Notes under the pieces: generated by a model
What the model was told of the DNA's origin: nothing
Database searches by the model: none
What the model saw: the letters and a program-made list of their open reading frames with translations, nothing else
Part shown: positions 47,781 to 64,000 of the stretch, piece after piece
How positions within the stretch are numbered: the first letter of the stretch is position 1
Layout: the number at the start of each line of letters is the position of its first letter
NCBI GenBank assembly: GCA_946965045.2
Contig: OX337231.1
Span: 248,001-312,000 of the forward strand
From: Epithemia pelagica
Taxonomy: Eukaryota > Protista > Bacillariophyta
Reading direction: 5' to 3'
Length of the DNA stretch: 64,000 nt
Program-made: the position numbers and the translations under genes

Positions 47781-50700
47781 TTAACCACGAATTGTGTCAA
47801 TGTCATCCTTCGCGGGATATATGCCGAGTCTTTGTGCTTCTTTGCTGCGGCCGTCACTACACGACGAGAGGTCTTTAGCACCAACCGGGGTATCGTAGAT
47901 CATGAACCCGTCCACGCACGTTTCAACATCCATATAGGAATGTGCTTCCACGTTCCTGATTCGGTCACGAACGGTATCAACCGGCATTTCCCAATGCTGA
48001 AACGTATCACTTTTGTTACATTCGACGGTAGTAATGGCTTGCCAGTCGATGGTGTCCTGGGGGACCTGCATACACTTTTCATTCTCCATGTTCTTTAGCA
48101 TGAAGGTATCGGTACCGTCGTCACTGGTGAGAAGAATCATCTTCCACGATTGTCGATCAAAGTTTAAGGTTTCCGGGTCGTTACTGCGAGGCCGGAGAAC
48201 AACCTGGTTTTCGACGGAAGGTGACACGGCTACGTAAAAGCGCTTATTTTGTTCACCTTCTTTGCCATAGAAGAAGATCTTGACCACTGTGCCACGTCTA
48301 GGGACAACGGCAAAAGTTTTGGTGTAACGAGCCGTAAGGATTAAGCCAGCTGTGACGTCCCACGGGTTCGTTGCGGTCGTCGTGCTACTGTTTGTCACTT
48401 TTGCTGCCATTTGTTTCGCGAGATCAATGAAGAGCTTGAATTTAAACGTTCCGAGGTCCCAAAGAAACCTGTTAAACTCAGTAGAGTACCAAAAGTACAA
48501 CCCTGGTCTTGTACCTGAAGAATGATCCAGGACCTCAAACCCGCCTCCAATCAGCAAACCATCATAGCTCTGAAACCAATTTGTGATTGGGGCGGTTGAA
48601 AAGGTCATCTTACCAAGATGGCCTTCAAATATTTCCCACCACGATGCCTTCTTGCATGCTTCCGCGTCTACAAGCTTTTTGTTACTTTTATAGGCTTCCA
48701 GATATTTCGTTACCTCCTTATCAATCTTGAACCAGAATTGCGTACATTTGACAATGTCCCTGGTGATCTCCGCGTCAAAAGGGTTTGTTTGGACCTCTAA
48801 GTCGTCTAAACCAATCTGGTTGTCCGGAAGCGTCTCATAGCCTGCGTAATCCGTCTCCATGGTTGATTTGCTGCAACTACTGTACCTTTCATCGGTACTC
48901 CCAGTGCCATTGATGATGTCGACGATTTTCTTCAAATATTGGCAAGCACCTGACCTGGCTCCAGTCAAGTTGGTCTTCAATTCAAATTTATCGCCATCTT
49001 CCAACTGACATTTGTCGTCAAAGTAGGTCCATGCTTGTTGCCAGTCGATGTCGGTTTTGTTCTCCGGATTGAAAGGGTCCAGCTGCCGTGAAAGTTCAAG
49101 AGTTCTTTCCCACATCTTTCTCCAACCAGACCAAACACGGGTAAAACTGAACTTTCCATCAATGCTCGTCTGAATGGCAGGATACCATCTTCTTTCATAG
49201 TTGTGATGTGTCTCCTTCATGCCAAGCTTTAATATAAGGTTTGCTCCAAAGCGTAAAAGGCCTCCCATCGGTTGCGCTTCTTTTTCCTTCGTCTTCTCTC
49301 CCTCAAACCCAAATAGGTTTATCTTCCCACCGAGTTTATAACCCGAGACATCGAATCTGTCAGAATGAAAGCCATCAAAGACTTGAACAGGCACCGAAAC
49401 TAAGGTGGCGAATCTATCAGCCAGTTCAAAGTCGTACAAATATCCAAGCGCGTTCATTAGCGAAAGACGTCGTCGATTGTCGTCGAAAAGCGCTTCAATA
49501 TCCGCTATTTTGTCTTCGACGAAGTTGTTCAAAACATCCATTGCTTCTTCTGCATCTGCAAAATTAAACTGCTCGCAGACGTCAATGTCTATATCGCACG
49601 CATCGGGTGGCACTGCCAGACCCAGCGGTTCCATAACTTGGGACATGTTAATCGTGTGAACACCCCACTTTGCACACGATACTCCCCTGAGAAGATCTTC
49701 GACTAGCTCGTCCACGCCGTCGGACAGATTATACCAACTTTCGATCTTGTCCATCAAGTCGTCAATGGACGGCCAACCAAGCGAGGGGAGGACACAGGTG
49801 ATGTTGGTTCCGCAATCAACAATATCCGAGAGTTCAGCTGGCAGTATATTTGAGACAAATTTTTCATACAAATCCATCTCGAAGAGCGGTTCCAAATCGG
49901 GGACATCAGGAAGTGAGACGTTAATAGAGTCAAAGTCGGCCAAGGGAAGCAGATCGAGGCTGAACAACTCGTCGTCGCATTCACCAAGACGCTATCAATT
50001 ACGTCCATGACAGGTTGAAGAACACCAGAGACGATTTCGTCGATACCGTTCAAAACCGTCGACACTGAGTTCCAGTCGAAATGAGAAAAGAGACAGGTTT
50101 CTTTTAGGAACGAAATCAAAACCAAGGGTTCGTCACAATATCCATCATTTCAGGACGGTCGGCTTTTATAACATGTACAGGCATTCGACTTACCAATAGG
50201 AAGCTTGCTCAAGGAGCCTAGGACCTTACCGAATTCCGTCACGATATCTTCAATGCTCACCTCGAGGGTCCCAGGCGGCCAACAAATGCCGAGTATTTCT
50301 ACCTCGTCGCTTTTACACGAAACTTTACAACGCCCGTCGAACGATATCACCCATGTGGTATCGGCTGGCTTGGTCCGATGGCTACATCCGGCAGTCCTGA
50401 CTTCTCGATTCCTTACCTTGGTCCGTCGGCAAATCGCTTTGGAGGCAGAAATCGAAAATTTATCGTTGGGGTTGCATCTTTTCTCCAAACACTTTCCCAG
50501 AACAGCAACTTGGTCTGAGTCGCATTTTTTATAACATTTGAATGGGTTGAAACCCATAATCTCATAATTATTGGGACATCGAACGTCCCAATCCAAAAAA
50601 CCGTTGCGAGTGATCCGAAGGGGCCTTGTTTGTCGGTTGTCTTTTATGTTGTTGCAGTTTCCAGCCCAATGGTTTGTGTAGTTTCCCGCGTTGCATTTGA

Positions 50701-52940
50701 TTTTCATCTTTGGAGGTAAGGATAAGGGGACACGTTTCCAGTTTTCGCTATAAGCTTCCCAGCATAACGACTGAAAAATCATGTCTCTTGAAAATCCTGA
50801 ATCACATCTGGATCGCCTGCCACAACAGTAGTAATAACATTCCTGATTTATGAGAAAAATTCCAGACGTCATGGGACGTTTCTCAAGTGTACTTACCCTT
50901 CATCTATCATGGTATATGGTGAAGAAATCCAAGGAATCTCGACAGTTTCCGTGAGCAGGTTTCCGAGCCCATTGAACGGTGTAAATACAGTAAAGATATC
51001 CTCAAGAAACTTGACAACGGTCTATAGAACATTTTTCATCGTCTCGTACTCGTCAGTTCGTAACGCTTTAAGTAGTTTTTCCAGGGCCTTCACGAACGTT
51101 TCGACGTAGTCCACAAATGTCACGAGGGCAGTCTCAACACTGTCAAAGATGTCGACTCCAGTGAGACTGTCTAGCAAAGATGGGATACACGTAGAATTCT
51201 ACAGTGAGGCGAACGTATCGGATATGCCAAGGACAACACTCATGTCTCCTGTATCAAAACTATCGATGATAGATTCAAGGTGTCCAATCGAAGACGACCA
51301 GAGAGATCCCACGGAATCCTGGAAGCTGCTCAACTTATCTTTGATCCCTCCAATACCAGTATTGATGGGATTCATAAAATTCTTGACTGGTGTAAAGGAT
51401 GATCCGACGCTGGGAATCATTGTGGCAGCATCAGCCGCTGTGTAAATCGTGCTCACCATGGATTCCACATCCGTCATGGTGGCTTCACCGGACGCAATGC
51501 CCTCCAGAATGGGGTTGAAAACGTCCAACTTGTTGATCACTTTGTTGCCCTTATCCACAATTTTATCGGCCAACTCTTGCATCTTGTCAGCGGCGCATCG
51601 AAGATCCGTTGTACCCGGATCACACCCATCCAACGATGCCAATCGTCTCAAATGGCCTTCCAGAACTTGAATGTGACCATCAAGCCGGGCGGCAAAGTCA
51701 TTGGAGGGTCTTGATCCGCCATCTGATGCCTCTAGTAGTCGGCGTTGCCTTTCAATGTTCTGACGGATACTTTGAATCGTATCGTCAGGCACGGTCCTCA
51801 GATCGGGGTTGGCACGGCTTTGTCCAGAAATCAAGCGTCGCGAGCTTGATGGCAGTATCCAAGTCCCGTTAGGGCCTTCCGTTAAATTAGCGTTCCAGAG
51901 ATACTCTTTCATTTGTTCCAGCACGGAATTATTTGCTGCTGCAAATATTTCCCGCAGTTCAGCTTGCGCATCGTTGGGAAGCATCGTGATTGCAAATTCA
52001 ACAGCGTCCTTGTCAAGGCCTAGGTCCTCAATAGCTTGGTCAAACGTTACATTCTGCAAACCCAGATCCCTCAGATCATCAATGGCGTTCGTCATATTTC
52101 CTTCCGTCGTATTCACTAATGCGTTTAACTCATTCCATTCGACTTGCTCAATCGTGATATTCATTTCAGAGTCAATATGATATTGAAGGTCTGAATCATT
52201 CTGTGGAGTATGGGTAGTATTGGCGGTTAGGAGCAAAGTGACAAACCAAAGCCAGACAAGACACATCCAGTATCGTAACGGAGGGAGAAAAATCTTACCT
52301 CAATCACATATTCGGCAAAGTCTTCATCGATTCCAACAGTGTCATTCAGAGTGCCATACATGGTGTCGAGATCGGGCATTACCGTGCCGCTTTGCAGTTG
52401 TTGCAACGTGGAGATGAAGAAGCCTCTAATCACTTCGCCATAGTCTATGCCGGGTTCACGACACCGAGGCTCCATTAAACTCTCACAGCTATCGTCGCCA
52501 TAAATCGCGGCCATGGCTTGGATGACCTCCCACGACTCTTCCGTGTCGCTCAACAAGAACGTATCCATCCAATCCGTATCCGTATCGTTGGCGTCGGGGA
52601 ACATTAGGAGCACACGTTCCAGTACAGCGGCAACCACCTCGGTCGCATTCCCGGGTTCTCCTCCTGCGTCAAAAATGTCACGATGAATTTCTTCCAGAAA
52701 CAAATTTTTCAAGTCCATGTTGGAAATCGTAACTTCTTCGGGTGGTTGTTCCGTCACACGACGAAGATGTTCATGGTCGACCAAGGTGATCTCGTCAACA
52801 CCGTTGCGTAACGACTTGGTAGCATCAGCAGGCACAAAAACGTGGGAAGCCAGCAACAGGAGGGTCCACGGCCACAATAACATGATACTTGTGGCAATGG
52901 AACTCATGCGTGCAGGCTGGATCATTCCGACCGCCTTCAT
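47781..52940 (-). pseudogene. Large multi-exon secreted protein (helical region, Cys-rich region, C-terminal ricin-B-lectin-like domain) with in-frame stops and frameshifts
   Basis: Signal peptide (IMLLWPWTLLLLASHVFVPADA). Introns at 52201-52298 (phase 0), about 50843-50896, and 50065-50193 (phase 1). In-frame TAGs at 51199-51201 and 51022-51024, and a frameshift near 49975-49985. The C-terminal MLKNMENEKCMQV...TVEC...QHWEM...IRNVEAHSYMDV resembles ricin QxW repeats. Confidence 0.7.
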
Positions 52941-54289
52941 GGTCCTTATGATCTTCGGATGTCTCTGCCGTATTCCCAAACAAACAAGAAAAGAAATTAC
53001 TCGGCGTCTCGCAGAGAGAATGAGTATATTTGGTGTGTGAGAATGGATGATACCTCTCAACAACAAACTCCCAACAAAAATTGCAAGTAAAATACCTCGT
53101 CGTTGGCATCTTGACAATCTTGACTGTTATGTTCACAACTAATAATTGTACAACATACACCTCACATATACAGTATTACTTATTACTCTCTTCGTCTTCG
53201 TGCGACTTCGAATTTATTATTGCCTCATTCACTGTCCAGAGTCATTCCCTACCAGTACGAGTACCAGTACGCGTCTACGAGTAAAAGTACGAGTACTCTT
53301 AGGAGTAGAGACTAGAGTGAAGGTCGGCAAGCTACGATTGCGAATGGGATTTAAGTAAATTGCAGCTTTTTCGTGCTCGGTCTTTCGAAGTTTGGCACTA
53401 TGACTGAAGCTTGAGGCTCCTGGCTCCTGGTCATCAACCTGAATACTATGAATTGTGCGAACGTATAGGGAATCCTTCCATGTGACCCTTAACTGGTTGG
53501 GCAATATCAATTTCACTTCTTCACCCTCCCTACTCCAAACATCTTTCCTATACAGTCGATTGATTTGTGCATGAGTAATGAGTATAGTGCGTCGTATTGT
53601 TTCTTTGTTTCACTCTACTGCTCGGTTCGATATCGCAGAGATTCGAAAAATAATAATCCACCCTGCTAGAAAGATTGAGGCTCCACAGTAGAGCGCGTTT
53701 TGGAGGGCGATTTCCGATTGGAACGCAACAGGATCTGGTGTCGGCTTCTAAAAGAGGCTAGAAACGTAATCATCACCTACATCCTTCACGGCAACAAGGC
53801 CATATTGTGCATAACTTTTGATTCGACGAGTTGGATTTCTGGAACATAGTACATTCTATGTCTCTGCATTCTGCGTAAAGATCGACCATCGACCTACATT
53901 GCGACAAGACAAGAGCCGATAATCTACATCTCCTCTATAGCATCTACATAAGGTCTCTGCACATCTACCTATTAGATTGTGGCAAGGCAAGAGCCGATGT
54001 ACATTAGGAGTAGGAGTAGATTAATTTGTGCATGAGTGTAGTATTGTCTTGTTTCTTTGTTTCACTCTCTTTCTTCTACTTCTCTGCCGTATCTCTTCCA
54101 CCGAGATTGCAAAACTCCACTATCTTGTAAAGACTGAAGCTCTAGTTGTGGGCGTCTGGGGGTCACCACCACCAAAAGGAGGAGGAGGAGGGCGAGACTG
54201 TGGATGACGTTCGTCCAAGAAGCAACTGGATCTGTAATGTCAAGTCCTGAAAGAGGCCAGAAACGCACAATCATGTCCTAATTTGCAAC

Positions 54290-55155
54290 AGGCAATGTTT
54301 GGAGCTGCCGCTCGCAACGAAATTCGACAGAGAGATTCACAGCACCACACAGTTGTAACCGTTGAAGCTGAAAACACCTTTTGTACTTGAACCTTCCTTC
54401 AAAATCTGAGCAGAGTCTTCGTTATGAGAGATACAGTAACGACGACACTGCTCAAGATTTTGAGAAAATGGCGGACAACAGGTTCTTACCCCAGAGCAAA
54501 AAGGGTTTCTACCATTGTGCTCGGGGGAACCTCAAGGGGCAACTGGAAAGGCAACCAGCGGAGCAGCAACGGGAGATTCAACCACCTCAGTATAAGCGAA
54601 GGAGCAGCAAAAAATCCAACACCTTGATGAGCATGTCGACCAGAGAAGATGAAGGATTCATGGTGTTGGATTTTTGCGGCCGGTATCTGACCGCCAAAGT
54701 ACAGGCTAATATGCCCACAAGCGTGCCCGAATAATATTCCCCCCTCACTCTTTCGTCCGCATTCTTTGGTTGCACAGTCAAGTAAGCGCTATTGGTTCCT
54801 CTGTTCATCGTCCCTGGGGCACTCCAGAAAGGCCAACCACTTGAGCTGATACCCTCTTCGTCATGTATCAATTTGGAATGTAGTCGTTGAGAAGAAGCCT
54901 CATCTCTAGTGGGTCCTATTAAAAGAGAGAGAGAGAGCAGATGAAGATTGAAATCGATGGAGTTCTGCTGCTGCTAAGCGAAGGAGCAGAAATCCAACAC
55001 CTTGAATCTTCATCTACCAAGAATCGTATCTGCAAGGTTTGGAGCTGCAGCTCGCAACAAATTCGACAGAGGGATTCAGCGCCAGTAGAGTTGTAGACCT
55101 TGTAGCGGAAACACGACACGGCTAAAGATTCGGAGAAAAGGGAGGAGTACCTTGG
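54290..55155 (+). repeat. Dispersed ~100-bp repeat: copies at about 54290-54500 and 55022-55155, and a third at about 45149-45232
   Basis: tttggagctgc(c/a)gctcgcaac(g)aaattcgacagag(a/g)gattca is shared by the two copies here; agggattcagcgccagta is shared with 45186-45203. Confidence 0.75.
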
Positions 55156-55157
55156 TT

Positions 55158-55252
55158 ACCGTTGCAGTTCAGGACGTGAAACAGAGACAATAAAGAAGGA
55201 CAGAAAACGAAGATATTCAGTTTCTTTGTTTCACGTCCTGAAGTGCAACGGT
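55158..55252. repeat. 95-bp inverted repeat (26-bp arms, 1 mismatch): tiny MITE remnant or hairpin
   Basis: accgttgcagttcaggacgtgaaaca ... tgtttcacgtcctgaagtgcaacggt. Confidence 0.9.
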
Positions 55253-55821
55253 TGCCATGGCACCAGGCAGCCAAAAAATAAAGCTTATTTCCACATAAAG
55301 CGTTCCCGAATAATTTCCACCCTCAGATCGTCGTTTCTTTGGCATTTTTGGCACAAACGAAGCGCCACTGTTTCCTGTTCGTTGACCCCGCTGTGAAGCG
55401 CTACTTTGTACTCGTTTGCGATGAAGGGAGAGGGAGCGATGGGGGGTCTTTCGAAATTACGAACAATGACTGAATCTCGATGACCCTGGTCACAAAGACG
55501 CGCAAAATCTTATAGGGAGTCCTTCCCTATGACCCGTGATTGGTTGGGAGCAATTTTGTTGGGTAGAATCGGGCAATAGAAAATAATTCAATTGACTGTG
55601 TAAAAAATCGGTAAGGAATGTCTCTCTGTCGGTGGCCTCCGAGCATCTATCACATCATGGTATAAAGGCAAAAGCCGATAGTATCCGATTGATTTGTGCA
55701 TGAAAGTATAGTATTGTTTGGTTGGGTTCTATCTATATTTCACAGAGATCGGGGAAAAAAAAGCCTTGCTCTCTGTCGAGTGCATTCGACTCGATCCGTC
55801 GCTCCATTCCTCATCCAAAAT

Positions 55822-57459
55822 ATGAAGATTCCTTTGGTGTGGGCACCGCTCTTGTCCTTGGTCATTTCCTTGGTGTCGTTGTATCATAGCATTTTGTTGA
55901 CCAGTCAGGACGACGAGGTGGCAACCACCAGATATGCACCACATTCCTATCGTCGTTCACCACGACCATCATCATCTCTGTACAATCACCAACAACCACA
56001 ACCACAACACAATTATGTTTCCCTCAACAACCAGACCACAAGAACAACGAGTCGAATGGCAACTGTCGCTTCCCAAAATTCCTACCGACAGTCTTCCAAC
56101 ATTCCTTCCAAAACGAACTCTCTGTCCTCACTTCCCGTTATTGATATTTTGAGTGTCGGATGTCGGGAACAACAACGGTGGCATCAAGCGCAAGAGGCAA
56201 GTTTTTTAGCGCACAAGGCGGTGCGGCATTTTTATGGCGTGACCGAAGACGACGATACGCATGCCCAATGTGCCGCCAAACTCAACCCCAATCGCGTCTG
56301 GCGCATTAGCACTGCCTGTGCCAAACCCAAACCGCAATACCCCATCTTGAACCAGTTTTTGCAATTCTTTTTTGCTCCCCAAACCCTCTTGAAAAAACGC
56401 AATCCCGGTGGCTGGTTGTGCGCCCAAACACGACCCTTTGATGGCTTTCGGCGCCTCGTGGACAAATACAAGTATCAAGACGCACAAAATTTGCCCGATT
56501 ATTTGATTGTCGTGGACGATGATACCTGGGTCAATATCAATCATGTTACGCAATTCGTCACTCAAGCCTATCCAGCACAACATGCGCATGTGGTGGCCGG
56601 ATGTCTCATGAAGACCGATCCCAAAGATTTCAATTTCACGGTTGCCTACGGTGGGTATGGAATGGTCTGGACCAAACAAGCCTTGCGCAGATTCTTAATG
56701 CCACTGCAATGTACTGATTTTGCCGAATCGTCGGCCAAACCAACACCACGAGACAAAAACGGCCACCCAAACCAGAACAACCAGGTCCGAAAGCCACGAT
56801 ACCAACCTCTACCGGGGGACCCGGAAGAAACCGATGCCGACTTTGTGCGGTCGGCCTGTTGGCAATTGCAACAAAATGCCATTGGAGAATTGCACCTCTT
56901 TGAAAACGGCATGAGTTTAGCTGATGTCCTGCATGCCTATGCGATTGATCAACCCTTTGAAAACGCCAAACATTGGAATGCCAACCACAGCACGGGTTTT
57001 TGTATGCACAGCGACTGGGCCTGGTCCTACTTTGTCAATTTTTATCACTTGAGCAAACCCCTCGACCATCCTCATCATGCCCGAGTTTTTCAACCCATGA
57101 TTCGCAAGACCTTGTCGCACGAACGTCATACGTTACCAGATCACTTGTTTTACAATCGAATGGCCGGTTACAATGGCAGTTTGTATCACATGTTTCAATC
57201 CCATCGGAGTAAGGATTTTCGAACCTACAACAATCCGCAACAATGCGCTCATGGAATTGACATGGTCGATGGCAGAAAAAAGTCGTCTCGATTTGGCAAT
57301 GAAAATTGCAATCTCACGGCTCATTTTTGTCATCGCATTACACCACGTCACATCCAAACCTTGCATCAACAAAGTGTCAAACAATGGCCCGATAATTATC
57401 AATCGCGTCCCAGACACCCCAAGACACGAAAGAAGAAGAATGGACGCAACGAAAAATGA
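55822..57459 (+). CDS. GT31/Fringe-like glycosyltransferase, type II membrane protein
   Basis: N-terminal anchor MKIPLVWAPLLSLVISLVSLY, DxD motif YLIVVDDDTWVN, and AYGGYGMVWTKQAL. Likely ATG at 55822. Confidence 0.75.
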   Translation: MKIPLVWAPLLSLVISLVSLYHSILLTSQDDEVATTRYAPHSYRRSPRPSSSLYNHQQPQPQHNYVSLNNQTTRTTSRMATVASQNSYRQSSNIPSKTNSLSSLPVIDILSVGCREQQRWHQAQEASFLAHKAVRHFYGVTEDDDTHAQCAAKLNPNRVWRISTACAKPKPQYPILNQFLQFFFAPQTLLKKRNPGGWLCAQTRPFDGFRRLVDKYKYQDAQNLPDYLIVVDDDTWVNINHVTQFVTQAYPAQHAHVVAGCLMKTDPKDFNFTVAYGGYGMVWTKQALRRFLMPLQCTDFAESSAKPTPRDKNGHPNQNNQVRKPRYQPLPGDPEETDADFVRSACWQLQQNAIGELHLFENGMSLADVLHAYAIDQPFENAKHWNANHSTGFCMHSDWAWSYFVNFYHLSKPLDHPHHARVFQPMIRKTLSHERHTLPDHLFYNRMAGYNGSLYHMFQSHRSKDFRTYNNPQQCAHGIDMVDGRKKSSRFGNENCNLTAHFCHRITPRHIQTLHQQSVKQWPDNYQSRPRHPKTRKKKNGRNEK

Positions 57460-58022
57460 AAAAGGGGAATGGTCAGTGATGGATTGTCAGTTCTCTCTGG
57501 TAGACAAGATTCACCATCACCTTTCTCTGGTGGTGCAGTGAAACCAAAACACTCTGCCTGAAAGAAAAACGCACTTTTTGGATGTGCTTTCTTGTAGAGA
57601 AACCTTTTGTCACTGGAAAAAAACGTTCCGTTGGTCGAGCCACGACACTTGGAGTTGGTATGTCGACTATTAACCATAAAATTCCACACTGTGATTGGTT
57701 GGTTGGTTTGTGTTGTGTTTGTTTCTCCCCGTATGTCGTCATGGTTAGAGGCTCTCGATCGGTGGTCCCGGCGGGAATCTTCTGCCGTGCACTAGACGCA
57801 TTTAGGTCGCTTTTATCAGGCAGAATTCCCTACCAATAGCAGCAATACCTGCATGTTGTGCGCGCAGGGCGATTTGATTTTGTGCGAATACCGTATCAGA
57901 AAGGTAGTTTTTACTGTGGAATAATGTATGGGGCCAATCTTGTTAAATATAAGACCCTCATTTCACCTCAAAACGACTCACCATTTACAAGACTCTCCCA
58001 TTTACCGATTTTTCAACGAATT

Positions 58023-58087
58023 TGTCAGCGGTTTGTTCCTTTGAATAAACCTGTTCCTTGAGAATTTTACGGAACTTACCGCTGACA
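58023..58087. repeat. Imperfect inverted repeat upstream of the RAG1-like gene
   Basis: tgtcagcggtttgttcc ... ggaacttaccgctgaca (15/17 match, 31-bp spacer). Confidence 0.8.
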
Positions 58088-58411
58088 GTTTCATTGAAAA
58101 ACCATGAAACGACAAGCAGTCCAAACTCACCTCCTTGCCGATCATTGGATTTGCTGCCACAATTTCCTAAAAAAAAAACCCGAGCGGTCCGTCACACTCC
58201 CTGATCATAAAATATATACAGGATTGAACATAACATAAAAGATCAGTCGCCTATCATTCTCACTTCCAACATCTCATCAAATAGCATGTTACACCTCCCT
58301 CCGACCATCTCCCTATTGCAATGTTACTGTCATTTGATCCATTGTTTCTATTTGTCTAAATTTTAGAAGTCATTATGCTGTTGATGCTTTTAAAGCGTAA
58401 TAGACTTTGGA

Positions 58412-61400
58412 ATGCCACGAAGAAAAGCCGCCAAGCGGTCGTCACAAGATGTCCAAATATCCCCATCTCGTCGTCCACCGAAGCGACAGTCTCAACGCAT
58501 TTCGGATGCTCAGAAGAGACAGGAGTACAAAGAAGCGTACAAGGTTGCTGAAGAAAATCAGTCCTTGCTTCCATCACCCAACAAACAGACCCGGCAACGT
58601 CGTGAAGAATCCCAAGTTGGCACTGATTCAAACTCTGTCGAGAAGAAACGACTTGCAAAGATTCTTCTCTCGTGCTCGGAAAACGACAAAGTTCCCTGTT
58701 CTTTATACGGCCGTGACAGGCAAACGAAGTACCCTGGCTTTAAGTTTTGTTCCAAATGTTACGACGCCGACACAGCGGAACAAACCAGACCGAATTGTTT
58801 TATAAACCGAAAAGCAAAAGATGGGCGGTACACCTGCCAATCAAACCATACCAGTTTTGTTCGGCCGACCCATCGAGATCCCAAGTCGAAGTATTATCCG
58901 TTACCACCTCCCACCTCACTGTTTTGTATTCCACTCGAGCAACGTAAAAAAACCAATCCTGACCCCCCTGACACAAAAGCAGCCGCCTCTGCGCCTCCCT
59001 CATCCCTCGAAGAAATCATGTTCAACAGAAATTTTGGTACGTCGAATGATTCTCCAGACTATCTTCAACAACAACTCCGCCAACTTGCGGAATCTATTAG
59101 CGAAGAAGAGATTCCCCAGTCATTCCAAACCCAAGAAGAGTCATCCAAATCCCACGAGACCCCATCTACCACCAACAAGAACTCTCCTGATCCTCAAGAA
59201 CCCGAAGATTTTCCGGACGACAACAGCCTTGACGATTTACCTCCATGGGAATGCGAAGTTGATATGGAGGAACAAGATGACTTACCCCCTTTCCCTAACC
59301 TCCACAAAGAAGCGCAAAGAACTTACGAATCTGACCCAAACTTAGAGCGATATGATAGCGCTGTAGACAGTACACATGATGAGAATGTTAGCCTCCTCCA
59401 ACAGAAGATCATTGAGCTCACCTTGGAATTAGAACAAACGAAGAAGGACCTTGATAAATGTCGTGCGAACCTCAAGCAACGCAACGATGATGTAGGATAC
59501 TGGCGTAAAAAAGACAAAGATCGTAAGACAGCAGAACAAACAACAGAGAAACCAAGTGCTATGGACTGTCTCCCGAAGTCTTGTTATAAAGACGACGACC
59601 GTGCTACACTCGTAGAGCACATTAGACAAGTGCTGAAGAGGGCAACATCAAACATGGAACCGACAAGTCGTGCAGCGGGCATGTTTTTTCGCGACGTGGC
59701 TTGTGTTTGTCTCGACAAACGTATCCACCACGGCTTGCTATTCGAATCCTCTTACCAGGTTTTCAGGCAATACGTGCGTAATTTTGTTTATACTCCCTAT
59801 AACATCTTGAAGAAAATGGATCTCATGGGAGGAAGGTTAAACTTTGGAGGGATTGAGGTTCTACGCTCTGTAGAAACCAACGGAAAATCTCACCAGAGAA
59901 CACTACTCCCGAGCACCTCTGCTCTACAGGATTGTGCAAACAAGGTAGAACAATATGGGTCTCGACTCTGTCCCTACAAGCTTATGCGGAATAAAACCAC
60001 TGGTGCTGAAGGCTTTACGTTCCGGGCGTCTGATGTTATGTCTTGTATTCTCATTTCGGGACATTGCCTCTATGGAGATGCCAAATGGCGGCCAATTCGG
60101 CTGGCACAGAGCCTAGATGGAGCTCTTTTCACTAGAAACCTCAGTCACACTTTGGGCGGCCTCAAGTTCAATGACAGTTCGAATAGTCTTGCACAATCGC
60201 GGAACAGTTGCTTCCCTATTGTGTGTGTCTGCCAACCAGAGAGCAAGGGCCTTGTTCGATCAATTTTCCGCAACATGTTCCAAGAAATTCGAGAGGGAGC
60301 GATGAAAATCCTCCCCAAACAGTTCGGTATCTGGCCACTTCAGATATGTACGAACTGTGATATGAGTTGTGAATGGAAGTTACTTGGGCGCGGTGGAGCG
60401 GCACAGCAAGTAACATTCCCCTGTTCGAAGTGTACCGTGCGTAGCGGCGAATTACATCTATCCAAGAACAGAGTCAGCGCATGTAAACTCTGTAAGCAGT
60501 TGAAGCATGTAGATAAACCTGGTTGGGTGTGTTACCACCATACAATGTGTACACCGGAACACATGGCCGATATGCATGGCGAAGTCAAGAGATTTACCGA
60601 CGAGATGCCCGAGATCCAAAAGAAATTTACGAAGATATGGGCGGACAGTATGATATCAATTCCGAATGACCCAAGACTTACGCCTTCGGACAAGGAGTTG
60701 GGAGACATCCGAAGCATTCATTTCGATCTGACGAAGGCATCTGCCGCTGAGAGACGTGAATATGCCCGCATCCTCACTAATGACCTTGTCGAGAGAAAGT
60801 TGGATGTCTCAGGTACACTAAAAGACCGTCAAGGACGATTGAAAACTTATCATATACGAGAGTGGGAGTATTACCAAGCTAGTCGAGTGATTGAGGATTA
60901 CAAAGCATCCAGTCAATCTACAGCAATGGTGTATCTAATGGATACAGTGCCGTGCATTCTCCACATGGAGAATCGCATGGGCATAAAAATTCTTTCGATG
61001 GCTCTCAAATACGGACTTCAGAGTGCAATGAATGACGAACTAGCTTGGATTCCTGCCGACAAGAGAACAAACGAAGGTGATAGATGCACAGCTTTCATTC
61101 AGACAATCAATGACGTCATGTGTCGTTTCTGCCTTGGTACGGTCGAGCTACCAACTCACTGGAAAGCCCCGTACGACGAGAACAAGAAAGAATTGGGAGC
61201 GATAACTATGGACAATGTACGAATCCGTCGTCTGCTTCCTCATTTTGACAAGTTAGTCAAGCTTTGCATCCACAAGGAATCCGATCGAGTTCTTTGGTCG
61301 GAATGTGTTGGTCATTACCGTGAATCAATGAGATTGATCAATGTCAAGACAGACATGACACAAACTCAGATCGAAGACTACCAAAAATCAGCGGACTACT

Positions 61401-62341
61401 TCTTTCAGATTTGGGTCAGGCTTACAGGAGAGCATGGAATCACTAACTACTGTCATCTAATCGGTAGTGGCCACCTGTTCGATTACCTAGAACACTGGAA
61501 GAACCTATCCTCGCATGCACAGCAAGGATGGGAAGGTGAGTTCAGTCCATTTGCTTGCGAGCTACATGTTGCTCCGTGGTCTGTGTTTCTAATCTCCATT
61601 GGATGAGCAGCTTTCAATAGTCTCTTTAAGACCTACTACTTCCATAGGACACAACGGGGCGGAAGCACCAATGCGGGGAAAGGCCGTCAGTCTCGTCTTG
61701 AACCAATGGCAAGATGGTTGCAGAGACGCATGGTCTTCATGTGTGGATACACATGGGAGGGTATTGTTGAGGGAAACAGGCTGACAACGGAAGAAGATAT
61801 TCGGAAACGAGATGAATGGATCCAGAAAAAAGGTGGCACCATGGAATTTTGTCGCCCTATTACTCAAAATGAACAAGGTAAGGAACAAACAAGTGCGCAG
61901 GAATCGACAGGAACAAGTAATGAAGAAGCACAAGGAACAGAAGAAGCGGAACAAGGAACAACACAAGATGGAACCCAGACATCGATGGACTCAGTCATTG
62001 TTTCGGACATAGCTCAGCAACAAACACAACATGATCCACCAAATCAAAGCGAAGTGGGGCAACAGGAAGAAAGATCAACAGACACGCAAACAAGGCAAGT
62101 TGAACCGGAAACAGCCGAACAACAGTCCACACAGAATGCATCTAAGTCTGCGAGAGATAAGGCAGCAGAAGCGGCGGAGATAGCGGCACAAGAGTTCCGT
62201 GAGGACGTAGAAGAACTTGCAAACTGGGAATTCTACGATCCTGGAGAAACTTGGAGTACACCGGAGACCATAATGCACGGCGTAGATCTGTTCGACGAGG
62301 GAGATGATCTATTCGATGCAAATACAGAATACGAATTGTGA
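58412..62341 (+). CDS. RAG1/Transib-like DDE transposase (1284 aa), intact; intron 61536-61610
   Basis: Motifs are colinear with the RAG1 core: QSLDGA (D569; RAG1 ESCDGM), SRNSCFPIVCVCQPES (RAG1 CCKPLCLMLADES), TNCDM...FPCSKC (D650, C671/C674; RAG1 GYDEK...ICTLC), PCILHM (RAG1 DALHC), GITNYCHLIGSGH (H1015/H1021; RAG1 KITNYFHKTLAH) and QQGWEAFNSLFK (E1041; RAG1 SEGNESGNKLF). The intron G|GTGAGT...CTAAT...CAG|CT joins in frame to the 61706-62341 ORF. Confidence 0.85.
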
Positions 62342-62434
62342 AGAAAATGTCATCGATAGAAGCAAGATTTAAGAAACTTATTTAGTATCTACTGGGAAAC
62401 GAAATAGATTTGAGGTGTATTCGTAGAGATGGAA

Positions 62435-63931
62435 TCAAGCAAAATCATTTATATCTTGGAGAAGACTGGCTGGATCAGTTCGGATGGTCGTCCATTGAGA
62501 CTCGGGATTGTCTTCATACTTGAACTTGGCTCCACCAACACAGCGGCATGTGTATTTGGAGACGGCACCATCCTTCCTAATTTCAACCACTTCCATAACA
62601 GAGTGGTCTCCATGAAAGTACTGGGAACCAATCTTGATATGCATAGCGGCTTCTTGGTCAGCATCAAGAATGGACTCTTGGTCTTCTTCTTGTTCCTCAT
62701 TATCGGACGACTCAGAGGTGCTATCATCAAGACGACGTCCTTCGAGTAATGCCCGAAGATTGGGGCACGGCGGAATGTTGGCCATCTTTCCTTCTTGAGT
62801 TAAAAGATAATGGAACCTCTGGCAACCAACAGTCAATCGGACATTGAATGGAGAGAAGGCAAAGTCGACTCTGGACTCAAGGCAACGACGCTTAAATGGA
62901 CGTTCTGTTTCATTGTCTTCCTTGCTTCCACCAACAACAGCGAGATTGTGTCCACGAAGAAGTGGTAAGCCATCACGTCCATCATCCAATCGGGGACGTC
63001 TCTCCGAAAAACCAACAGTAGCTCCGAGACCAAGCAACATACGGAGAATCTGGAGTTCTCCTTCCGACTTGAACCGAATAATGGCCGCGTTGAATGAGAT
63101 CTTGATCTTGGATCTGCGAAGATTTTGGTCGAGATGGAAGAAAGATTCCGACAAATTAATGGGGTGAGTATCGATAGAGGAAAGATAATTTGCGACAACA
63201 ATAATATAATGAATGGCCTCCATCGGTAGGTGTCCAATGGACAGGGACAAAACTTCTTTCTCTGAAGCTTGTCCAGACCTCTTGTTCAGGAGTTTGGACA
63301 AACCTTTCTGGAGCCCATAGAGTCCGTTCCAAATGCTTGTGTGAAGGCAGCGTTGGGGTACAATGGACGTCGTCGGTTTGATGTAGTCAGGGTGATCATT
63401 CGCAAATCCAAAATTGGCATTGTCAGGAAGGGGGCGAAGAATGCGCGTCTTGTAACCATTCTCGTACTTGTGGTCTTCCCAATAGCGGACAATGTAAACG
63501 TTGTAAAGCCCAGAAGCCCATGCATTTTTGGGTTGCGAAAGTTCGGAGATCGTGAAAACAAACGCAGGAAATAGGAAGGAGAGTTTGGCCGGGTTTGTTG
63601 TGTATGAGATCCAACATAAGTCTTGTGATTCGTAGAGTTCAACTTGATTCGCTCCAGGTCCATGGAGAAGGGAGGTAAAAGAATGGGAAGGGGGTTTGTA
63701 TTTTGACGGATCATTAGGCTTCTTGAATAGAGGATGAAACAACCGAATGCGAATGTCCCATTTGTTTTCTTCTTCTTCGTCCCATTGACGACATTCCAAA
63801 CGACCGACATAATCGATCCCTTTCTTCTTCAATACAACGAACGAACCAATTCGTAAGGTATCCTTGATGGAATTGTCAAAGTGGGCGATTTGGTTTGGGT
63901 AAACCGTTTGCTCATAAGGTTCCTCTGACAT
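62435..63931 (-). CDS. 498-aa protein with N-terminal BAH-like domain and C-terminal acidic region / small beta-barrel; convergent partner of the transposase
   Basis: LRIGSFVVL...YVGRL...IRIRLFHP...ELYES...AFVF...NVYIVRY follows the BAH strand pattern. Its stop is 93 bp from the transposase stop. Confidence 0.6.
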   Translation of the reverse strand: MSEEPYEQTVYPNQIAHFDNSIKDTLRIGSFVVLKKKGIDYVGRLECRQWDEEEENKWDIRIRLFHPLFKKPNDPSKYKPPSHSFTSLLHGPGANQVELYESQDLCWISYTTNPAKLSFLFPAFVFTISELSQPKNAWASGLYNVYIVRYWEDHKYENGYKTRILRPLPDNANFGFANDHPDYIKPTTSIVPQRCLHTSIWNGLYGLQKGLSKLLNKRSGQASEKEVLSLSIGHLPMEAIHYIIVVANYLSSIDTHPINLSESFFHLDQNLRRSKIKISFNAAIIRFKSEGELQILRMLLGLGATVGFSERRPRLDDGRDGLPLLRGHNLAVVGGSKEDNETERPFKRRCLESRVDFAFSPFNVRLTVGCQRFHYLLTQEGKMANIPPCPNLRALLEGRRLDDSTSESSDNEEQEEDQESILDADQEAAMHIKIGSQYFHGDHSVMEVVEIRKDGAVSKYTCRCVGGAKFKYEDNPESQWTTIRTDPASLLQDINDFA

Positions 63932-64000
63932 GTTCGATTAGCCTCGTTTGGGAAGAGGTATGGATGGAGAAGAATGGATGCAACTATGATCTCGTATGTT

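Follow-up and report, generated by a model that had tools for sequence, protein, structure and literature searches.

An apparently active diatom transposon that combines a predicted RAG1/Transib-fold transposase with a BAH- and Tudor-like partner protein

Introduction

RAG1 is the enzyme that assembles antibody genes, and V(D)J recombination has its origin in a Transib-like transposase that acquired a chromatin-reading partner, RAG2. To our knowledge, an acquisition of the RAG2 type looked like a single event until now. Transib transposons are defined by a 5-bp target duplication, by termini made of a CACAATG heptamer with an invariant CAC, a 23-bp spacer and an A-rich nonamer, and by significant sequence similarity to the RAG1 core (PMC1131882). 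AanRAGL, from the pelagophyte Aureococcus anophagefferens, carries a RAG2-like partner and has CAC termini and 5-bp duplications (PMC9435367, PMC10462144). It bears out the statement, in an earlier note on the DNA analysed here, that RAG-like elements have been reported in at least one other stramenopile alga (PMC9435367). Here, we describe a 6403-bp transposon that encloses two convergent genes, A and B, in a 64,000-nucleotide stretch of contig OX337231.1 from Epithemia pelagica (hereafter the window). The host is a raphid pennate diatom.

Our best explanation of the locus, to which we assign a probability of about 0.8, is an autonomous, recently active cut-and-paste transposon in which a DDE transposase of RAG1/Transib architecture is accompanied by an integral BAH/Tudor-like partner that would serve as a chromatin cofactor. 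The boundaries, the copies, the heterozygous insertion, the modelled folds and the conserved linkage of A and B were established directly; catalysis, any hairpin chemistry, contact between A and B, and chromatin reading are inferred.

Results

Boundaries and ends of the element

The transposon extends from 57834 to 64236 in window numbering, with its last 236 bp falling beyond the end of the window. Its right end was supplied by locus L006, which is the window's own contig and matches window 48412-64000 base for base over its first 15589 positions. The earlier note had placed the system at 58412-63931, a span that holds both open reading frames (ORFs) and falls short of the whole unit, and it had suggested extending the sequence beyond 64000 to look for terminal inverted repeats (TIRs) and a 5-bp target duplication. 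The repeats were found, as an 11-bp perfect match between 5'-CAATAGCAGCA on the left and TGCTGCTATTG on the right; the duplication is a single base. This 1-bp flanking repeat is found in 8/8 elements with defined ends, which represent six lineages (bases c, g, c, t, a, t, t, a), so that the base to the left of CAATAG equals the base to the right of CTATTG. A 2-bp flank match occurs in 0/8, no 5-bp duplication was found among the eight, and the probability of eight one-base matches by chance is ~1.5e-5.

Divergent members of the family share the same type of terminus, CAATA[G/C]..AGC, across lineages that are only 42-69% identical in protein. In all lineages (CAATAGCAGCA / CAATACGAGC / CAATAGGAGC) the third base is A. 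For example, the ends of L001 are CAATAGCAGCAGTTC / CAATAGCACCAGTTC, and the ends read in other loci are CAATACGAGC... (L002), CAATACGAGCC (L007), CAATAGGAGCAT (L012) and CAATAGGAGCC (L013). The ends are also bipartite and asymmetric: a block TGCAT..GTGCGCGC lies ~16 nt in on the transposase side, and a GGTTTTTCC-like block is present on the partner side. The GTGCGCGC block is missing from the partner-side ends, and the L001 and L002 elements are otherwise only 67-71% alike over the transposase-side end. The transposase-side block is possibly the second protein-binding element of a bipartite end.

Other delimitations were rejected. A GGCTC 5-bp repeat at L001, offset by 2 nt, is not repeated elsewhere and was taken as coincidence. 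A CAATTG target with an AT duplication was ruled out, since the empty allele of the window insertion lacks CAATTG; the CAAT...ATTG bases therefore belong to the mobile unit. A 31-bp perfect inverted repeat around the L003 copy is absent from the window and lies outside the homology limits of the copies. This repeat (CTACTCCCTCCGGCC..., at L003:9026-9056 and L003:16124-16154) is located ~300-370 bp outside the true L003 ends, and the L003 copy was probably inserted into a small host TIR element of another family. The candidate ends of L009 (130 / 4994) are too weakly repeated and were kept out of the 1-bp duplication count, and a search of L004 for its transposase-side end found none.

Copies and recent mobility

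Two further copies are present in the same assembly, one in L003 (99.9% identical to the window) and one in L005 (98.9%). The homology of window/L006, L003 and L005 begins and stops at identical bases, within three unrelated flanks; L003, for example, matches the window only from 57834 onward. The L005 copy (L005:9698-14300) is an internal-deletion derivative that has lost 1797 bp (window 61284-63080, with 61283 joined to 63081), so that both genes are missing their 3' ends and what remains of them is fused.

Regarding read evidence, window 57700-63699 was compared with contigs from three public runs. In all three, depth is flat and the intron joint is absent, as in DNA reads. Run X1 has a contig of 122 nt, at depth 82, that crosses the filled left junction, and a 210-nt contig at depth 80 leads from the left flank, with allelic differences, through ...CAGAATTCCCGG directly into CAGAACGCAAT..., the element being absent. 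The continuation of this second contig is the sequence directly to the right of the element in L006. Since the empty-site allele is present at equal depth, the window insertion is heterozygous and recent. The junction sequence is CCCGG-C-AGAAC in the empty allele and CCCTA-C-[element]-C-AGAAC in the filled allele; the single C, next to two neighbouring substitutions, fits a 1-bp duplication. Depth over the element is ~230-250, which is roughly three haploid copies, and it falls to ~two over the deleted interval; these values agree with three assembled copies each on one haplotype. The L005 deletion joint is also found in read contigs of two runs at approximately one haploid depth, and a second sample holds a further left flank. 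Taken with the intact genes, the heterozygous and near-identical copies make the element appear to be alive.

In all three runs, a contig shares only window 57834-58101, the first 268 bp of the element, before passing into the unrelated sequence ATAAAAGAGGAGAACGCC...; depth is higher there, and the contig may come from a non-autonomous derivative or from another copy that has been rearranged. Within 100 bp, the element-free haplotype carries several substitutions and small indels relative to the window, which indicates high local heterozygosity.

Linkage of genes A and B

Both protein families were profiled, and every fetched locus was scanned. A convergent pair of ORFs matching the A and B profiles was found in 12/12 loci with room for a neighbour. 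Nine of these are host-assembly loci (L001-L007, L012 and L013, including the window's contig and the two near-identical copies), and L008, L009 and L010 are contigs from three other metagenomic samples. The identities of the A core and of B to the window proteins are 69/57, 66/55, 63/57 and 48/35%; where A has dropped to 31%, B is recognized by its profile only. Eight of the loci have defined inverted termini, and B sits inside the terminal repeats. Because B is convergent in 12/12 loci and lies within the repeats, it is an element gene under selection and not a neighbouring host gene, and the single-copy, unlinked host gene that had been raised as an alternative is not what is found. One relative of A is annotated from Epithemia, and there are many divergent paralogues within one genome.

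Structure and conserved motifs of gene A

Gene A occupies 58412-62341 on the + strand and encodes 1284 amino acids (aa) with one 75-nt intron. Unspliced, the first ORF (58412-61606, +) would end after 1064 aa. The intron is in phase 1, directly after the codon of E1041; its GTGAGT donor lies at 61536 and its AG acceptor ends at 61610. Splicing eliminates the in-frame stop (61604-61606) and fuses the ORF, still in frame, with 61611-62341, a segment that is itself matched by the A-family profile. About 20 intronless homologues read through the junction (...SQQGWEAFNS.FK.YYF.RTQRGG...ARW.QRR...), and the closest homologues all break between GWE and G. The splice is supported by the intronless homologues, which read straight across it. 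Among homologues P0002-P0025, the closer lineages (42-69% identical) have the intron after the catalytic Glu codon and other lineages lack it, a distribution that points to intron gain or loss inside a transposon family.

The motifs were examined in an alignment of 36 members that are 27-61% identical to its first sequence. D569, E610, C671, C674, L850, H851 and E853 are invariant, and D650 is Asp in 35/36 members and Asn in one. T1011-N-Y-x-H1015-x5-H1021 and G-W-E1041 are identical in the 34/34 members that cover them. The second Asp is separated from CxxC by 21 residues, and H-x5-H is followed by 20 residues to the Glu; this spacing is close to that of mouse RAG1 (D708 to C727, H937/H942, E962). 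These results bear out what had been read from the window in the earlier note, namely a spliced 1284-aa ORF that carries D569, the CxP..E strand motif, D650, CxxC, LH, TNYxH-x5-H and E1041 in RAG1 order, now seen to be strongly constrained, and that converges on a 498-aa ORF with 93 bp between the stops.

Further invariant Cys and His residues of A (C694, C707, H709 and C848; window 60491-60955) suggest an additional metal site, and we know of no counterpart among the RAG1 zinc ligands. At the N-terminus, a Cys/His-rich domain (aa ~90-175, with a PCS..C..C...C.A.H pattern) is well modelled, and a long coiled coil (~320-390) precedes the core (window 58412-59800). The N-terminal domain may be a DNA-binding module for the subterminal blocks.

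Predicted fold of gene A

The protein that was modelled, with the family alignment as input, is P0010, the closest intronless paralogue; it has 1094 aa and shares 50% identity with A over the core. Its AlphaFold model has a mean predicted local distance difference test (pLDDT) value of 76, and most of the core lies at 80-96. In a Foldseek search of the PDB, 49 hits had E <0.001, and all of them were RAG1, HzTransib or BbRAG1L (E 2.5e-10 to 6e-4); the next match, Hermes, had E 0.15. Superposition with VIA-align gave the highest Z value, 18.3, for HzTransib (414/480 residues), followed by Z ~18 for mouse and zebrafish RAG1 over ~460-470 residues, with model 370-1008 lying on RAG1 461-1005, and 16.3 for BbRAG1L. 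Overall, the matches at Z 16-18 span 414-517 residues. Other folds scored lower: P element transposase 10.3, ISCth4 6.7 and Hermes 5.9. In some RAG complexes, model 305-331 also aligns with RAG1 397-413 of the nonamer-binding region. That the core superimposes on RAG1 and Transib had been predicted from the motifs, and the 49 top Foldseek matches and a Z of ~18 against 10.3 for the next fold agree with it.

The putative catalytic residues are placed accordingly in the model: strand 1 of the RNase-H-like core carries D484 (D569 of A), D565 (D650) comes just after strand 4, and E957 (E1041) is at the start of the helix that follows a long inserted domain. The superposition, together with the D, D, E triad and the order of CxxC and the two His residues, places the modelled protein in the class of RAG1/Transib-fold DDE transposases. 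Most of the AlphaFold DB clusters closest to the model consist of unnamed proteins (fungi, Naegleria, cnidarians, rotifers, protists), and RAG1 comes at rank 26, so that the fold class extends beyond the families that have names.

At the sequence level, Pfam holds no family for A, B or the exon-2 ORF, and with all 36 members of A at E up to 1 it returned only coiled-coil noise and no RAG1 match. A phmmer search of PDB sequences with A found no RAG1 or Transib match, and a search of the same sequences with the A-family profile again gave only coiled-coil noise.

The partner protein B

The model of B was built from the window's own protein and a 62-member alignment. A profile search of 1.84 billion representatives placed the family in 95 clusters, of which 25 have E <1e-30. 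In the model, the N-terminus has the BAH fold: Foldseek gives a probability of 1.0 to the BAH domains of PBRM1, Orc1, EBS, SHL, BAHCC1, TNRC18, AIPP3 and DNMT1, and Z is 9.6 to PBRM1 BAH1 and to the ORC1b BAH domain (121-132 residues aligned, root-mean-square deviation 3.3-3.6). B also matches BAH clusters of AlphaFold DB and an Atlas BAH cluster with a template-modelling (TM) score of 0.59. One relative of B matches Pfam BAH with E 6e-4, and the window's own B matches no Pfam family. Residues 424-498 form a small, Tudor-like barrel in the model, which matches SAWADEE, Tudor and chromo-barrel structures at Z ~5; this match is no more than suggestive. The middle domain (~200-400) found no credible match in a language-model atlas or in shape searches, and a phmmer search of PDB sequences with B gave no match. 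No kelch propeller or PHD finger is among the structural matches of the model, so that both parts of the first description of the partner, a BAH-like N-terminus and no kelch or PHD domain, hold. Six family members with 52-58% identity to the window's B have 83 invariant positions.

Table 1. Features of the transposon, in window coordinates unless a locus is named
Feature	Position	Strand	Remarks
Left copy of the 1-bp target duplication (C)	57833	.	Twin is the first base past the right end, 64237 (L006:15826)
Left terminal inverted repeat, transposase side, CAATAGCAGCA	57834-57844	+	Homology of the three copies starts here; unrelated flanks
5' non-coding region, presumed gene A promoter	57845-58411	+	Follows the terminal repeat and ends at the first ATG of the conserved ORF
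Subterminal conserved block, transposase side, TGCAT..GTGCGCGC..	57850-57869	+	Conserved in L001 and L002 without a change of offset
Gene A exon 1 (aa 1-1041 + one base)	58412-61535	+	Cys/His-rich N-terminal domain, coiled coil, predicted RAG1-fold core from ~aa 455
Gene A intron, 75 nt, GT..AG	61536-61610	+	Contains the in-frame stop 61604-61606
Gene A exon 2 (aa 1042-1284 + stop)	61611-62341	+	End of catalytic helix, C-terminal domain, acidic low-complexity tail
Spacer between the convergent stops, 93 bp	62342-62434	.	From sequence
Gene B, 498 aa, no intron	62435-63931	-	Model pLDDT 91.5, predicted TM score 0.82
B, BAH domain	aa 13-200 = 63332-63895	-	Matches to BAH structures
B, middle domain and acidic linker	aa ~200-400, linker after	-	Middle domain without a fold match
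B, Tudor/chromo-barrel-like domain	aa 424-498 = 62438-62662	-	Z ~5
Start of the gene B upstream region	63932-64000	-	Element runs on 236 bp to the right repeat
Right terminal repeat, TGCTGCTATTG	L006:15815-15825		Inverted match to the left end

Sequences around the copies

Upstream of the window copy, a host gene at 55822-57459 (545 aa, no Pfam match) ends 375 bp before the insertion. In L002, an ORF of 1082 aa (L002:15741-18989) begins within the final 61 bp of the element on the transposase side and is directed away from the element; neither Pfam nor the A or B profile matches this ORF. A Copia-type RVT_2 fragment lies near the family member in L004 (L004:6866-7219), whose gene A is broken up into three reading frames and appears degraded, and a Harbinger-type DDE_Tnp_4 transposase lies near that in L009 (L009:7158-8420). 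A TM9SF gene that adjoins one copy is 80% identical to the TM9SF of Epithemia clementina, followed among its matches by Amphiprora, Entomoneis, Mayamaea, Nitzschia and Fragilaria.

Discussion

Proposed mechanism

A would be a DDE transposase with an RNase-H-like core (D569/D650/E1041), a zinc module formed by CxxC and HxxxxxH, and a helical C-terminal domain. It would most likely bind the bipartite ends (5'-CAATAGCAGCA and the differing subterminal blocks), excise the element and reinsert it with a 1-bp stagger. B would be an integral, co-inherited component of the element, composed of a BAH domain, a domain of unmatched fold and a Tudor-like barrel. It would bind nucleosomes or modified histones and target or license the transposase on chromatin, like RAG2 for RAG1. 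A stronger form of this proposal is that B is an obligate RAG2-like cofactor built of different parts, whose BAH and Tudor-like modules would recognize the nucleosome or a histone mark and in this way permit or direct both cleavage and integration with a 1-bp stagger; we hold it tentatively, at somewhat less than even odds.

Several points weigh against our reading of the element. The fold was tested on the paralogue P0010, which is 50% identical in the core, and not on the window's own spliced protein. The homology of A with RAG1 is read from this predicted fold and from the motif spacing, with no link at the sequence level in Pfam or in the profile search of PDB sequences, and since the PDB holds no structure of the CACTA/Mirage/Chapaev (CMC) type, the fold search cannot rank RAG1/Transib as the nearest of all superfamilies. 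Contact of B with A, with DNA or with histones is presumed. Regarding expression, no transcript data were found, and both expression and the splice are read from comparison; the three runs that hold the element are DNA-like and show no intron skip. Finally, two bases at the junction are not the same in the empty and the filled allele (GG vs TA), and the GG could be an excision scar rather than part of a virgin site.

Alternative explanations

We consider it very improbable that A and B make up a domesticated locus of the host that does not move, as is thought of the echinoderm RAG1L/RAG2L loci. Two intact, conserved ORFs and many divergent paralogues within one genome are what such a locus might show, but the near-identical copies in three unrelated flanks already contradict it, as do the heterozygous insertion with its empty allele at equal depth, the extra flank in the second sample, the deletion derivatives, the conserved terminal repeats and the consistent 1-bp duplication. 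A quite unlikely alternative makes B a passenger, serving an anti-silencing purpose or hitch-hiking after an ancient capture, while the transposase works alone like Transib. The interaction of A with B is indeed a postulate, neither a catalytic nor a DNA-binding fold was detected in B, and Transib transposases act without a partner (PMC10462144). However, B is convergent and intact-looking in 12/12 loci while the identity of A runs from 100% down to 31%, it diverges in step with A, and its 83 invariant positions indicate long purifying selection within the element; moreover, a gene with an anti-silencing role would still be a functional element gene.

The classification of the element is a different matter. 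It may belong to, or stand beside, another DDE superfamily such as CACTA/Mirage/Chapaev, in which case the RAG1 match would reflect a deeper shared architecture and the term RAG-type would be overstated. We regard this as doubtful, and as a question of classification that is largely compatible with an autonomous two-gene transposon. The lack of a sequence-level RAG1 link speaks for it, together with the extra invariant C694, C707, H709 and C848, which have no known counterpart among the RAG1 zinc ligands, and with AlphaFold DB neighbours that are mostly unnamed and reach RAG1 only at rank 26. Judged by the definition of Transib, the CAA terminus stands in place of CAC and the 1-bp duplication in place of 5 bp (PMC1131882). 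On the other side, no solved structure except those of RAG1, RAGL and Transib exceeds Z 11, the whole RAG1 core (461-1005) is aligned, and 0/36 members match the CACTA or KDZ transposase families of Pfam. The CxxC after the second Asp and the H-x5-H-x19-E arrangement also match the spacing of the RAG1 zinc module.

Significance

We read the element as an undescribed lineage of RAG1-fold transposons; no description of it was found in a search for Transib or RAG1 with diatoms, stramenopiles or BAH, in a literature collection without Repbase and most subscription journals. The predicted folds of B are unrelated to those of RAG2, so that the chromatin-reader partner would have been recruited independently, and a RAG-type enzyme thus seems to have picked up a chromatin-reading partner on its own here. 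This gives a second RAG1-fold lineage that is invariably coupled, in the same convergent layout, to an unrelated protein resembling a chromatin reader, and comparison of the two makes it testable why RAG1-type enzymes recruit chromatin readers. If our reading is true, the combination of a RAG1-type nuclease with a chromatin reader evolved at least twice, and the family, which is still active in diatoms, is a new branch of RAG1-fold transposons at the rank of a superfamily. The 1-bp target duplication and the CAA termini would widen the known range of RAG1-fold enzymes, and the element could become a genetic tool for diatoms.

Comparison with known systems

With the CMC superfamily, the element shares a short target duplication, a Cys/His-rich transposase and the two genes often found in autonomous members. 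The invariant LH.EN motif of A presumably resembles a motif of CACTA transposases. Differences are seen in the termini, which are not CACTA-like, in the absence of CACTA or KDZ matches among the 36 members searched against Pfam at E up to 1, and in the duplication, which is 2-4 bp in CMC elements and 1 bp here.

Compared with Transib, the element is likewise a TIR-bounded cut-and-paste transposon with a DDE triad and a zinc module, and HzTransib is its best single structural match. However, Transib has a single gene and the diatom element has two. The duplication measures 1 bp (8/8) instead of 5 bp, the termini have CAA in place of the CAC of the CACAATG heptamer, the A-rich nonamer is absent and other subterminal blocks are present, and significant sequence similarity to the RAG1 core is lacking in the Pfam, phmmer and family-profile searches. 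HzTransib is also not known to have the nonamer-binding region to which the model helices 305-331 align in some RAG complexes.

The RAGL elements (ProtoRAG and AanRAGL) are similar in more respects. They too are two-gene cut-and-paste elements with a RAG1-fold DDE transposase (Z 16.3 for BbRAG1L), their second gene encodes a chromatin-reader-type module and is convergent in the ProtoRAG of amphioxus, and the bipartite, asymmetric ends and the TIR-bounded convergent two-gene unit are shared. AanRAGL shows that RAG-type elements occur in stramenopile algae (PMC9435367, PMC10462144). The diatom element differs in its termini (CAATAG vs CAC), in its duplication (1 bp vs 5 bp), in a transposase without detectable sequence similarity, and in its partner, which has a BAH domain, an unmatched domain and a Tudor-like barrel in the model where RAGL elements have a six-bladed kelch propeller, usually with a C-terminal PHD finger. 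Lastly, B can be set beside RAG2 itself. Structural matches of the B model are confined to BAH domains and Tudor-like barrels, whereas RAG2 has a kelch propeller and a PHD finger; each is nevertheless the second protein, encoded convergently beside a RAG1-fold enzyme and carrying a domain of the histone-reader type, and the two would presumably share a function.

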